The translations under genes and the position numbers were made by a program. The notes beneath the pieces are model-generated. The model was not told the origin of the DNA. It saw only the letters and a list, made by a program, of their open reading frames with translations, and made no database searches. Of a DNA stretch of 64,000 nt, positions 58,448-62,916 are shown piece by piece. The DNA is from Guillardia theta CCMP2712 (lineage: Eukaryota > Protista > Cryptophyta): positions 812,533 to 876,532 of the forward strand of contig NW_005434668.1 in assembly GCF_000315625.1 (NCBI RefSeq), read 5' to 3'. Position 1 is the stretch's first letter; every line of letters begins with the position of its first letter.

Positions 58448-58966
58448 GGCGCTCGAGCCCTTAATTGGGGGCTGTGGGTCGGGGTCATCAACGCCTTCAA
58501 ACGAGAGGGGTGGCCGAGTTAAGTGCATTCTGAAAGAGGGGTAGGGGTGGAGATAATGAAGGGATCGTGGGATGTAATGTCAAATTACTTAAAGACTATC
58601 ATATAAAAATTGAAATTCATACTGCTAATGTGATCAGTCTTGATCCAAAAGGGGTGGGTATCCAAGGTACACGATCGGTCACGGGGTGGTAATAAATGCC
58701 AAGGGTGGGGTGAACAATGTACCCCACCTCTCCGAGAGCAAAATTGCGATACAGGAGGGGTAGGGTAGATTGTTCAGTCACATATAAGAGGGGTGACACA
58801 CTATGACCAATGGTGACCCAAAAATTCAAGAATCTCAAAAAAAACGTCGAAATCGCGGTGTGGTGCAAACCCCGAACGGTAAAACAACAAAGGAGCAACG
58901 AGAATATAGTATGTTGTGATTAAAAAAAGAACATCCCTGCAAATCCACCTGTACAAATCAATTCTT

Positions 58967-59148
58967 CCGAAGTCTAAACACCCGTCTGTTTATCTATCAA
59001 AGTAGAAGTAGGGGTGGGTACCAGGTTTGTGGCTCAACAAACTTCGAATATTTCCCGCCTTCCGAAGTTCCCGCCTTCATCCGAAGTCTAACTACCCGTT
59101 TGTTTATCTGTCGAACTTGAGTAGGGGTGGGTACCAGGTTTGTGGCTC
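58967..59148. repeat. two 68-69 bp direct repeats upstream of Fanzor
   Basis: 58967-59035 and 59081-59148 share CCGAAGTCTAA..ACCCGT.TGTTTATCT..AGTAGGGGTGGGTACCAGGTTTGTGGCTC (last 29 nt identical). Confidence 0.92.
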
Positions 59149-59290
59149 TGTAAAGATTTCCCCGCCCTCCCGCCTTCTCTCCCTCCCTCCCATCCTCCCT
59201 CCCGCCTTCCATCACTCCCTTCTTCCCGCCCTCCCTCCCTCCCTCCCTCATTCCCGCCTTCCGAAGCTCCCGCGTTCACCCTGATCAAAT

Positions 59291-61225
59291 ATGGGGAAAA
59301 GGAAAAGAGGAAAACAAAGAAAGTCTTGTTCTGATTCACAGACGACTGTCAAGATGTGTTTGAAAAAACATCTCAAACAACACACAATGATCGGTGTGAT
59401 TGATGATTGGGTGAAACACATAAGCAAAATAAGCCATCGAGGTAGCATCATCTTCAATCATCTATTGTTATGGTGTTTTGAGAAGGATTCAATGCAAGGT
59501 GATGATACGTACATTACACGGCTGTTTGATCAGATATACAATCGTACTAGAAAAGTAACAGACAAAGAAAAAGAAGAAGGGATGCAAGAAGAAACGGTCA
59601 AGACCAATGGTGGAGAGAAAGTTTTCTTTCGGACCTGTTTTCTGATGGGTGAAAAACGCAGAGGTAATGCAATTCAGTTTGATATTTTAGACGAGTTTTG
59701 GCAAGAAAAAGGGAACGAGTATCTACCAATACAACGCAGGAAAGAAGGGGATATTCGAGTACTGTACTATTCTGCTGATCAATATGCAACAAATTTCCAA
59801 AATTACATATTCTATACGATGGGACAAAAACAGACTAGATACATAAAGGAATGGGGAAAGCTCAATGGGATTTCTTCAGAAAAGGAGATACAGGATATAC
59901 GGAATGCAGTAAACGGATGGAGCTTTCCACCAAAAACTCGTGTTCTCGAAAGACAGGATGTCATTGATTTCATAAGGGAACAAAAAGAGATCATTGGATG
60001 GGACAATCATTATAACTTGTCATGGGCCCGTGACAAAATCAAGAAAAACCCTGAGCAGCAAAAATGGATGCAATTACACATGCCAAATCTTGTCAAGTAC
60101 CATTTTTCGGTTCTGAGGTTTTTGGAGATTCATGATATATCTGATCGATACACGATCGCTCCGATTTTTCAGATACGCAAACAATTTATTCGCGTAGACA
60201 TTTGGGGTTTATTCTACATTATGGATCAATCTGGTCTGTTGCAATATTCAAAGGGTGGGAAAAGCAAATGCATGAAAAAGTTCACACAACAAAAACATAA
60301 GCGATTCTTGTCGGTATTGAAGCTACAATCAAATTTGAGAAAGAAAGGGACAGTTGATAGCATACAGACTGACGGAGTCGCACTCTGTGTGACGTTCAAG
60401 AAGAGAATACACAATGAGACAGACCGTGATGATACTACTACAAAGAAAAGCAAAACAAGAGATTGTGATGTGTCCTCAAGACGAGTTATTGCAATCGATC
60501 CTGGTCGCAATGTACTGATATGCGGTGTCGAGCAAATACCTGGTCAAGAAAAACCAAAGCAGTATCGATATACTCGAAGGCAGTACTATCATGAGTCTCA
60601 TATTACTCGGAATAACGCCAAGTTAGAAAAATGGAGACAAGGCATAACAGAGGAATCAAACGATATTGCAAGAGTGTCAGCAAAAACGTCTCGGTTGGAT
60701 CACTTTGAAAGATACATCGACACCGTGGTGAGACTAAGCGAGATCCTGTTCGAACACAATTGTCAAAACAAGTTCGCACGCCTGAAGATGGATAACTACA
60801 TCCACAAACACAAGGCGATTGATACGTTCTTCAAGAAGATGAAAGGTAATGGGACAGATCAAAATCCAATAATTGCATACGGTGATGCATCATTCGGTTG
60901 TACTGGGCGTGGAGAGAAGTCAGTGCCTGTAAAATGGATCAAAAGGCGATGTCAGAACTTCTTCGAGGTGACGGTAGTTGATGAATACAGAACGACAAAA
61001 TGTTGCAATCAATGTCATCAAGAATTGTATGATTTGAGACGCAAACAAATCAACAAGAATGGTATACTTGCTGACGAAGTGTCAGTGGTGCGGGGTTTGA
61101 AATGGTGCAGATCCACCAATTGTGTTCAAAACCGTATCAAGTCTCGTGATGTCAATGCTGCTATGAATATTCTATTGTGCTACATGTCTCTACCAGCACG
61201 ACCAGATTTTCTGAAACGGCCTTGA
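59291..61225 (+). CDS. Fanzor1 (eukaryotic TnpB-like RNA-guided RuvC endonuclease), 644 aa
   Basis: RuvC-I VIAIDPGR (D403), IAYGDASF, rearranged RuvC-II VDEYRTTK (E565), Zn finger C572/C575/C606/C611, RuvC-III RDVNAAMNI (D620). N-terminal NLS-like KRKRGK and TVKMCLKKHL. Intronless and AT-rich. Confidence 0.92.
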   Translation: MGKRKRGKQRKSCSDSQTTVKMCLKKHLKQHTMIGVIDDWVKHISKISHRGSIIFNHLLLWCFEKDSMQGDDTYITRLFDQIYNRTRKVTDKEKEEGMQEETVKTNGGEKVFFRTCFLMGEKRRGNAIQFDILDEFWQEKGNEYLPIQRRKEGDIRVLYYSADQYATNFQNYIFYTMGQKQTRYIKEWGKLNGISSEKEIQDIRNAVNGWSFPPKTRVLERQDVIDFIREQKEIIGWDNHYNLSWARDKIKKNPEQQKWMQLHMPNLVKYHFSVLRFLEIHDISDRYTIAPIFQIRKQFIRVDIWGLFYIMDQSGLLQYSKGGKSKCMKKFTQQKHKRFLSVLKLQSNLRKKGTVDSIQTDGVALCVTFKKRIHNETDRDDTTTKKSKTRDCDVSSRRVIAIDPGRNVLICGVEQIPGQEKPKQYRYTRRQYYHESHITRNNAKLEKWRQGITEESNDIARVSAKTSRLDHFERYIDTVVRLSEILFEHNCQNKFARLKMDNYIHKHKAIDTFFKKMKGNGTDQNPIIAYGDASFGCTGRGEKSVPVKWIKRRCQNFFEVTVVDEYRTTKCCNQCHQELYDLRRKQINKNGILADEVSVVRGLKWCRSTNCVQNRIKSRDVNAAMNILLCYMSLPARPDFLKRP

Positions 61226-61400
61226 ATCACACATGGGTCTGGTTATACTTCAACCTGTTCTTCATAGAAAGGATGAAGTACGAGTCAGACACAAGGAAAT
61301 ATTGGCGTGTGGGTCTTCAATGATCCATAATTTCGACGGAAAATTTAGAATTTTGAAATTTTATGTTTTGTGTCGTTTAGCTAATATAAGAGGCTTCACC
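61226..61400 (+). ncRNA. candidate omegaRNA (scaffold plus guide)
   Basis: Long hairpin 61237-61290 and second hairpin 61308-61329 directly after the Fanzor stop codon. Ends inferred. Confidence 0.6.
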
Positions 61401-61509
61401 CTTAATAATTTGAAGCCAACATTTATTCCGCAACTTTTCAAGCATTTCAATCTTTCTGCCCAGTAGATTCCGTCAAATTTCAGAAGAAACACCCCTGGAG
61501 CAAAAATAC

Positions 61510-62916
61510 ATGGCGTCCGAAGCAAGTCAAGAAGTCCGGTGTGCACCTCTTCGCACTCTTTTTTTAATGTTGACGATGATGTTGATCAGGCGGTGTTACA
61601 TTCCGTTCCTCTCTCAACAAGCACGTTTCGTCTCGCCCATTCCCCCAATCCACGAAGTTGAATACATTTCGACCACTCTCTCGACCAGCCTTCCGAGCGG
61701 GCTACGGCAGATTCTGCTCATCCGGTGCAGGTAGTGACGATGCAGCACGAGACCAGATCTTGGTTATCGTTGAGTCTCCTTCAAAAGCCAAGATCATTCA
61801 AAGTTTCCTCGACTCCCTCTACGTCGTTGAGTCGTGCATGGGTCATGTTCGCGATCTCCCCCAGAGTGCCAAGTCTGTTCCTCCTGAATTGAAAGCTCGC
61901 TTCGGGAAGGTGGTTGGTGTGGATCCTGACAATCACTTCGAGCCCCTCTACGTCACTCTTCCTGGCAAAGAGTCAGTGATCAAAAAGCTGGAGGGGATCC
62001 AGCGCAAAGCAAAGGAAGTCATCCTTGCGACCGATGAAGACAGAGAAGCCTGGGAAGCAATCAGTTGGCATCTGCTCGAGCTGCTGAAGCCTAAAGTTTC
62101 TCACTCACGTCTCTTGTCGCTGCTTAGCTTGTTGTAGGTGCCGGTGAAGCGAGCTGTCTTCCACGAGATCACCAAGGATGCCATCACTCGCTCGTTCCAG
62201 TCGTTGCGATCCATCGATCTCAACCTTGTCCATGCACAGGAGACGCGGCGAATTCTGGATCGTCTTGCCGGGTTCACCATGTCGCCGCTGCTGTGGAAGA
62301 AGATAGCTCGCGGGTGAAGAGAAGCACTGTGAGCGCTTGCCACTGACTTGTCGCAGGCTTTCTGCTGGGCGAGTACAGAGTGTGGGGATGGCAATCATAG
62401 TGCGACGAGAGCTGGAGAGACTATCGTTTGTTCCTGCTGCTTACGAAGTTCGACTTGCGAGCAAACCTCTCAGCGGTAGAAGGCAGCGATGCCAGGCACT
62501 TCAGCGCCATGGTAGTTGAGGTGGAAGGGAAGGGGAAAGTAGCAACAGGAAGGGACTTCGACGCGAAAGGGCAGCTCCACGAGAGCTCAGGGAGAGGAAA
62601 ATTGATCCACCTTGACAAGGAGTCCGCGAACAGCCTCATGGAAGGACTGAAGCAGCAGGGAGCTAGCTGGAAGGTGAAGAAAGTCGAAAAGCGGGCACAG
62701 CGGCGCAAGCCTCCTCCTCCTTTCATCACCTCTACTCTGCAGCAGGAGGCCAACAGAAAGTTGTCGCTTAGCAGCAAGGAGTGCATGAGGACGGCGCAGA
62801 GGCTGTACGAGTCAGGCCTGATCACCTACATGAGGACAGACAACCCCACAAGCTTCGAAGATGAGACTTTTAAAACTTTGAAACGTCTTGAAGACATCAA
62901 CGTTTCAAAACTATAA
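61510..62916 (+). pseudogene. topA: bacterial-type DNA topoisomerase IA, organellar-like leader, disrupted and truncated
   Basis: LVIVESPSKAK, GHVRDLP, LATDEDRE, FHEIT, SAGRVQS, PFITSTLQQEA, AQRLYESGLITYMRTD. Insertion in the TOPRIM motif, frameshift at ~62445, and homology ends at ~62850. Confidence 0.8.

Follow-up and report, generated by a model that had tools for sequence, protein, structure and literature searches.

Two questions are raised by an open reading frame of 644 codons in the genome of the cryptophyte Guillardia theta: whether it encodes a Fanzor1 nuclease other than GtFz1, the one already characterised from this organism, and how a gene with no transposase beside it could be carried and spread. 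The frame lies in the window analysed here, a stretch of 64,000 nucleotides at C6:812533-876532. The explanation that best accounts for the data, and that is held to be probable, is that the frame encodes an intact Fanzor1 nuclease of a family distinct from GtFz1, residing on a young, multi-copy, non-autonomous transposon of about 2.6 kb that is proposed to use a homing mechanism. Whereas Fanzor1 is a known kind of system, this member of it is uncharacterised and clearly unlike GtFz1. Few Fanzor1 nucleases have been characterised so far; one of them, GtFz1, failed to edit human cells, and its catalytic site is unusual in having N in place of D. The window Fanzor1 is a ready candidate for biochemical work, with its canonical triad, seven near-identical copies, a defined right end and a TAM prediction. 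The general picture of Fanzors is unchanged by it. Table 1 gives the features of the window copy.

Table 1. Features of the window copy of the Fanzor1 element (positions within the window)
Feature	Position	Strand	Basis
5' target-site duplication ATAT, preceded by C58781; predicted part of the TAM	58782..58785	+	7 other left ends
Damaged left terminus, AAGAGGG in place of the TGGTTAA of all other copies	58786..58792	+	Left ends of 7 other copies
Left arm and 5' region, starting GTGACACACTATGACC	58793..59290	+	BLAST boundary at 58793
Fanzor1-family nuclease gene, intact, 644 aa	59291..61225	+	ORF reading, family profile, AF2 model
Candidate omegaRNA scaffold, stop codon to right terminus (...GTGTCGTTTAGCTA, 61383) and ATAT	61226..61387	+	Conservation, fold
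Predicted guide-encoding flank AAGAGGCTTCACCCTTAATA..., unique to the window copy	61388..61407	+	Inferred from Fanzor/TnpB architecture

The nuclease and its relation to GtFz1

The gene begins with ATG and contains no internal stop codon, and its GC content (0.38-0.43) is lower than that of the flanks (about 0.5); an earlier note on this DNA had described just such an uninterrupted, low-GC frame. That note had also named three catalytic residues, the cysteines of a zinc finger and a basic N-terminus, all of which were recovered. A scripted residue check placed the catalytic positions at D403 (IDPGR), E565 (VDEYRT) and D620 (RDVNAAMNIL) and cysteines at 571, 572, 575, 606 and 611, with C572/C575 and C606/C611 making up the TNB/OrfB zinc ribbon within RuvC. 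The N-terminus carries the basic patch MGKRKRGKQRKS.

Homologues were collected by an exhaustive HMMER search in which cluster representatives were counted. The search returned 1862 representatives at E<=1e-3, and 169 at E<=1e-30, counts that place the feature far beyond chance. An alignment of 50 of these representatives served as the family profile, and the AF2 model was built on the same alignment. Six positions are invariant in it (D403, P404, G405, E565, R619 and D620), and each of the cysteines C572, C575, C606 and C611 is kept in 35-46 of the 50 members. Against PDB sequences the profile matched SpuFz1 (8gkh, E 7.5e-30), PpFz1 (9cf0, 1.9e-27) and GtFz1 (9cer, 7.8e-20). D403, E565 and D620 fall on the catalytic motifs of SpuFz1 and GtFz1. 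Pfam assigned the Cas12f1-like TNB domain (PF07282) to residues 559-627 of the window protein with an E value of 2e-4, at 21.9 bits and thus below the cut-off of 26.3; the same domain is matched by 40 of the 50 relatives, with a best E of 9.6e-11. Single-sequence searches with the window protein (phmmer against PDB; NCBIfam) returned no matches, not even to 9cer.

The AF2 model (pLDDT 90.1, pTM 0.89) was compared with PDB folds by Foldseek. The top seven matches were all Fanzor1 structures (SpuFz, PpFz and GtFz; E 1e-20 to 1e-17, TMq 0.53-0.68), with alignments of 670-800 columns that span the full length of the model and take in the WED, enlarged REC, RuvC and TNB parts of the Fanzor1 fold, whereas Cas12f, Fanzor2 and TnpB lay far behind (E 1e-6 to 1e-4). 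The Fanzor1 identity claimed in the earlier note, which proposed an HMM and structure comparison as a check, is thereby borne out in two independent tests, the profile against PDB sequences and the model against PDB folds. Judged by the model, the window protein is a Fanzor1 with SpuFz1 as its structurally nearest relative.

SpuFz1 (PDB 8gkh, 9ceu-9cez), from the fungus Spizellomyces punctatus, is the best match by both structure and profile (Foldseek E 1e-20, TM 0.66-0.72), at a structure-based sequence identity of about 16-17%. The two proteins have in common the D-E-D triad, the TNB zinc ribbon and a basic N-terminus, and each is encoded by a single ORF on a transposable element with a 3' omegaRNA, a candidate one in the window. 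The SpuFz1 TAM, CATA, also resembles the (Y)ATA at the left flank of the window element. The carriers differ: SPu-1, which bears SpuFz1, has 33-bp TIRs and a TA duplication (PMC3627910), whereas the window element has weakly inverted ends and a 4-bp ATAN duplication, and the 3' RNA region measures 89 nt in SpuFz1 as against some 160 nt for the candidate here.

The earlier note could not say whether the window protein is GtFz1 (XP_005840014.1; PDB 9cer/9ces/9cet). It is a different protein, a conclusion that follows from the low identity, the separate locus and the third catalytic residue. The two do share a genome, the Fanzor1 fold (Foldseek E 1.5e-18) and the order of RuvC motifs, and their three catalytic motifs are collinear. 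However, pairwise alignment of the 690-aa GtFz1 with the 644-aa window protein, by which their identity was rejected, gave only 22% over 321 aligned columns (aa 356-628, E 8e-6), and what aligns of the N-terminal halves is confined to short, weak segments. The window protein has the canonical D620 where GtFz1 has N658, a non-canonical catalytic residue (PMC11423790). The GtFz1 gene start, as given by Saito et al. 2023 in their Supplementary Data 3 (PMC10432273), falls at C7:894431, the coordinate printed there for NW_005434667, which identifies the genome as that of G. theta CCMP2712. The G. theta locus file of the same study lists two loci, on scaffold_7 and scaffold_348 (PMC10432273). Contig C345 matches the GtFz1 start with one mismatch, which suggests that the second locus is also of GtFz1 type, and the N-terminus of the window protein is absent from the locus file and the other supplements searched. 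GtFz1 is present in two copies and has a broken DDE_3 transposase upstream, whereas the window family has at least 7 intact copies and its element in the window has no transposase. That the window protein is nonetheless GtFz1 or a near-identical paralogue, with nothing new about it, is hard to credit: shared organism and protein class would speak for it, as would the GtFz1 TAM of TTAAN (PMC10432273), which recalls the TTAA within the left terminus of the window element, but these are outweighed by the sequence and locus differences above and by the failure of single-sequence phmmer to find 9cer in PDB.

The carrier element and its ends

The window gene is the sole gene of an element of about 2.6 kb, here called family 1. 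Seven full-length ORFs, 99-100% identical, and at least 15 partial copies, many of them 5'-truncated, were found in the genome. Since dS between copies is only 0-0.02, the family must be very young, and dN/dS says little. The earlier note had reported no adjacent transposase, and indeed the element contains no transposase ORF; in the window it is flanked by a topoisomerase fragment and, on the minus strand, by a DUF829-like gene. Two further Fanzor families occur in the same genome. Family 2 (C72, C201) is about 42% identical, and its ends are unrelated to those of family 1. Family 3, a sister family (at least 10 copies, e.g. C23:691012-694698), is about 47% identical to the window protein in the RuvC half and about 26% in the N-terminal half. 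Like family 1, it is multi-copy, about 2.66 kb long and without a transposase. Its gene has an intron near the 3' end, whereas the window gene has none.

BLAST of the other copies against the window gave common boundaries at 58793 and 61386. The right end of family 1, ...TGTGTCGTTTAGCTAATA, is sharp in 20 loci, with unrelated DNA beyond each. At the left, seven other copies read Y-ATA-N-TGGTTAA-GTGACACAC, in which only N varies, and in five of seven paired copies this N equals the base after the ATA of the right end. Family 3 behaves in the same way: its left end is T-TA-N/CCTTTAATCGAC and its right end ...GTGGCGTTTATCTA/TTAN (slashes mark the boundaries), with equal N in 3/3 copies. By a binomial estimate, eight matches in ten over the two families would arise by chance with a probability of about 0.002. 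A Tc1/mariner model with a TA duplication was rejected, as the base after TA varies. The simplest reading of the ends is a 4-bp target-site duplication, ATAN in family 1 (ATAA, ATAT, ATAG and ATAC were seen) and TTAW in family 3 (TTAT/TTAA), each with a central TA; TTAA itself was not seen in family 1. With this reading, the family-1 element proper is TGGTTAAGTGACAC...GTGTCGTTTAGCTA. Its ends are weak inverted repeats, TGGTTAAGTGACACA and TAGCTAAACGACACA matching at 11 of 15 positions, and its right terminus resembles that of family 3 (GTGTCGTTTAGCTA and GTGGCGTTTATCTA). The left arm of the window copy contains two repeats of about 113 nt (58962-59148), whose number is not the same in all copies; immediately ahead of the ATG lies a (CCCT)n tract (59161-59249).

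An empty site was sought in several ways. One DNA run held no read joint skipping the element, metagenome contigs contained neither the reconstructed empty-site 34-mer nor the left-end 22-mer, and no paralogue of the left flank of the window element was found.

As for the enzyme that moves family 1, the termini resemble those of piggyBac-like elements of the same genome, in which the PF13843 profile finds 15 piggyBac-type transposase matches. One such element with a transposase, on C8, has TTAT/CCTTTAATCGACAAAC at one boundary and, on the opposite strand, TTAT/CCTTTAAACGACAAAATT at the other. The left end of family 3 is identical to this C8 TIR over its first 15 nt. The family-1 right end has TAAACGACA.AAA in common with it and differs in the outer 3-4 nt; taken as the reverse complement, TAGCTAAACGACACAAAA, it agrees with CCTTTAAACGACAAAATT in 12 of 18 positions, and for the left end the agreement is 10 of 16. 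Fanzors in piggyBac elements are listed in Repbase, as cited by PMC13565253. In family 1, ATAN stands in place of the TTAA duplication typical of piggyBac. A search for an element that combines a transposase with family-1 ends found none, the solo ends on C191 and C131 (L055, L056, L066) included. Given the resemblance of the termini, the most likely mover of family 1 is a piggyBac-like transposase that is encoded at another locus and acts in trans.

Candidate omegaRNA and predicted guide and TAM

Eight copies agree at every one of the 161 nt of 61226-61386, a stretch with a strong computed fold. In the sense orientation the minimum free energy is -49.8 kcal/mol (z = -5.4), and none of 200 shuffled sequences folds as well; the antisense strand reaches -33.1 kcal/mol (z = -3.6). 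The stronger sense fold points to an RNA structure of the sense strand, the 5' limit of which may reach into the coding sequence. The 3' region of family 3 also folds strongly (z -5.65). Ten variants of the 3' region contained no compensatory double changes; the changes seen are one-sided and compatible with pairing (G.U to A-U, U.G to C-G, U-A to U.G), and two insertions fall at unpaired positions. Rfam gave no match to the region.

RNA reads at the right end, taken from about 6% of one raw run, are mostly antisense, polyadenylated and derived from other copies, with a truncated copy on C82 supplying more than half of them. They pile up at 61344-61386, with poly-T before 61344, and run into the flanks of those other copies. 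Most simply, they are antisense host transcripts polyadenylated inside the right end. No sense small-RNA reads from the 3' region were seen in that 6% of the run. Low-depth contigs of what are probably RNA runs cover 60258-61343 and carry variants of copies other than that in the window; family 1 is probably transcribed.

In Fanzor and TnpB systems, the DNA immediately beyond the right end supplies the guide (PMC10432273, PMC13565253), and in solved Fanzors the 5' target-site duplication is part of the TAM while the 3' duplication lies within the omegaRNA scaffold (PMC13565253). The right flank differs in every family-1 copy. The base before ATA is C or T in all eight left flanks and A at the right end (AATA). 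By analogy with the solved systems, the TAM of the window Fanzor1 is predicted to be (Y)ATAN, and the A at the right end could spare filled sites from self-cleavage. What the data show directly is the protein family with its fold and triad, the number of copies, the element ends with their duplication and a conserved 3' region able to fold; the omegaRNA, guide, TAM, nuclease activity and mobilising transposase of family 1 are inferred. The catalytic competence, programmability and separate TAM proposed in the earlier note fit the intact triad and the conserved, structured 3' region.

The proposed mechanism would run as follows. The structured stretch of about 160 nt between the stop codon and the right end would be transcribed as an omegaRNA that runs into the flank, with a scaffold ending in ...GCUA-AUAN and a guide starting at 61388. 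Excision of the piggyBac type would restore the donor site exactly, and the Fanzor-omegaRNA complex would recognise this empty site, with (Y)ATAN of the 5' duplication serving as its TAM and the right flank being the target. The complex would then cut the empty site, and homologous repair from a filled copy would return the element ('restorative homing'); re-cutting would thus benefit the element as TnpB benefits IS605. Restorative homing would suit this vehicle especially well, since piggyBac-type excision is scarless, and the combination of scarless excision with a homing nuclease offers a testable rationale for the retention of Fanzors by DDE transposons.

The closest parallel is the TnpB-omegaRNA homing of ISDra2, an IS200/IS605 element. 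Its TnpB shares the RuvC/TNB core and is presumed to re-cut the scarlessly restored donor site; its guide RNA is encoded at the right end and reads into the flank, as would that of the window element, and its TAM is the target motif of the transposon, as is predicted here. There are also clear differences. The TnpB fold matches the window model weakly (Foldseek E 2.9e-4, TM about 0.2-0.3) and has neither the enlarged REC domain nor the RuvC insertions seen in Fanzor1, and ISDra2 is bacterial, is moved by a Y1 HUH transposase and has neither TSD nor TIR.

The window copy and competing explanations

The window copy itself is damaged at the left. The first six bases of the altered terminus, AAGAGG, copy the right flank at 61388-61393, so that the left end looks like the product of a deletion with templated insertion, as by microhomology-mediated end joining. 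Lacking the outer 7 nt of its left terminus, this copy is probably no longer mobile. The nuclease gene and the 3' region are intact, and the 3' duplication ATAT is found at 61384-61387. Farther to the right, 61416-62848 reproduces C6:703953-705375 at 98.8% identity. The copied stretch is the 5' portion of a topoisomerase IA gene (Toprim, Topoisom_bac); in the window it starts 28 nt past the 3' duplication and 32 nt past the right terminus, and ends mid-exon. The loose end at 61416 was considered as an empty allele and rejected, as it is the paralogous duplicate of C6:703953.

The damage bears on how the ends are read. An IS605-style alternative would have the element start at GTGACAC, with TGGTTAA as flanking target, TTAA(N) as TAM, no duplication and no DDE transposase. 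It draws on the homology boundary that BLAST against the window copy sets at GTGACAC, on the TTAA directly before GTGACAC in 7 copies and on the TTAAN TAM of GtFz1. That boundary, however, is peculiar to the damaged window copy. The alternative would also demand a target conserved at 11 of 12 nt (YATA-N-TGGTTAA) at seven unrelated sites, and it leaves aside the matching of N across the two ends in both families. Moreover, TGGTTAAGTGACACA and the right terminus form an inverted repeat, and CCTTTAA.CGACA also occurs inside the TIR of the piggyBac-like elements. On target conservation, N matching, inverted-repeat pairing and the piggyBac-like TIR, the TTAA-flank model was rejected and is regarded as quite improbable. 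Still less probable is a domesticated host gene with a cellular role, no longer part of a mobile element. Saito et al. raise non-transposon roles for Fanzor loci without IRs and transposase (PMC10432273), but the copies here are dispersed, near-identical and often truncated, with defined ends and duplications, and their base composition is unlike that of host genes.

More weight, though still well short of an even chance, is given to the possibility that the window copy is an inert relic, immobile, with a dead nuclease or RNA and a frame that is open only through youth. Besides the missing terminal 7 nt, its protein carries changes not found in other copies (K143E, an extra D378-R379, N381D and A562V), the part of the RNA run that was read held no reads assignable to its flanks, and dS is so low that an open frame would be expected even without selection. 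Yet the triad and the zinc ribbon are intact, the private changes affect either columns that vary in the alignment or the loop 378-388, where model confidence is low, and seven other copies have exactly the same 3' region. A nuclease acts in trans, and a damaged end leaves it unharmed. That the family has been preserved over the long term is shown by its seven intact copies and by the relatives that other cryptophytes possess (Hanusia phi, 41% identity). An intact nuclease of a family distinct from GtFz1, on a transposon with a proposed homing mechanism, is thus preferred over all these alternatives.

A further-reaching version of this preferred explanation is put forward only tentatively. Family 1 would have evolved together with a piggyBac-like vehicle that changed its target from TTAA to ATAN, with (Y)ATAN as TAM and AATA as the protective form, and the window copy would bear the scars of cutting in vivo. 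Two such scars may be read from its sequence: the left terminus (7 nt) replaced by a templated copy of the right flank, and the capture of the 1.43-kb gene fragment, whose origin lies 170 kb away, at a point 28 nt inside the flank that the predicted guide would match.

Truncated, possibly recombined and partly deleted copies of the element

Across the whole genome assembly, matches to the right end of the family-1 element outnumber those to its left end (23 versus 11), and many copies are therefore 5'-truncated or persist as solo right ends. The latter could serve as additional putative guide RNA loci, a role suggested by analogy with the "ghost" loci of S. punctatus, to which the solo right ends of G. 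theta are likened. Such "ghost" loci have reportedly been described for S. punctatus. A solo left end of 41 nt that includes the terminal TGGTTAA lies at C191:90008, where it adjoins unrelated DNA.

Only two family-1 copies, those on contigs C14 (L003/L038/L059) and C78 (L006/L034/L058), carry unequal duplications. The mismatch is reciprocal, with ATAC...ATAA around the C14 copy versus ATAA...ATAC around the C78 copy. Ectopic recombination between two copies would give this pattern, as would a swap during assembly.

In some family members, the candidate omegaRNA region is almost entirely deleted: about 147 nt are missing after the end of the CDS, and of the right end just the final ~40 nt remain. 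The table includes two cases.

Coordinates of features in and around the Fanzor1 element and the GtFz1 locus
Feature	Coordinates	Strand	Context
Broken DDE_3 transposase, two ORF pieces	L033:1129-2019 (G000:C7:893559-894449)	GtFz1 CDS strand	PF13358
Topoisomerase IA gene fragment	window 61416-62848 (1433 nt)		duplicate of C6:703953-705375, 98.8% identity
Two direct repeats, ~113 nt each	window 58962-59148		5' region of the element
(CCCT)n tract	window 59161-59249		3' of the ~113-nt repeats, immediately upstream of the ATG
Deletion of candidate omegaRNA region	L073:1900-2047		90%-identical contig, JGI metagenome or metatranscriptome
Deletion of candidate omegaRNA region	window joint 61202 to 61350		G. 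theta DNA contig, run X3

The 5' region and RNA reads at the right end

The direct repeats upstream of the Fanzor1 gene contain a perfect 29-mer, AGTAGGGGTGGGTACCAGGTTTGTGGCTC, and their number varies among copies of the element. Together with the (CCCT)n tract, they may represent promoter or 5'UTR features.

At the opposite end, reads of other copies from the raw RNA-seq run map to window positions 61344-61386, and 37 of them carry a non-templated poly-T stretch ahead of 61344. These reads resemble antisense transcripts of host origin whose polyadenylation site lies about 43 nt within the right end of the element. A G>A change at 61365, which marks the truncated copy on C82, is present in 63 of 110 reads, and further RNA-seq reads extend past the right end into differing flanks.

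Neighbouring genes and relatives

The topoisomerase fragment beside the element starts 28 nt past the 3' ATAT duplication (32 nt past the right terminus). It duplicates the 5' portion of a gene for topoisomerase IA, in which Toprim and Topoisom_bac domains are encoded. Sequence upstream of the C6:703953-705375 locus is present in RNA contigs, which identifies that locus as the expressed topoisomerase gene; the window copy stops mid-exon and is thus a gene fragment.

At the locus of GtFz1, the characterised G. theta Fanzor1, the DDE_3 pieces (IS630/Tc1-mariner type; E-values of 3.4e-6 and 2.3e-13) lie directly upstream of the published CDS, and the second overlaps the Fanzor start codon.

Outside the reference assembly, a 98%-identical copy of the element is found on the ENA metagenome contig ERZ930071 (L072, 3405 nt), at an insertion site absent from the reference and with ATAA directly after the right end. 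The nearest relative beyond the family is P0006, a protein of the cryptophyte Hanusia phi (EukProt), at 41% identity.
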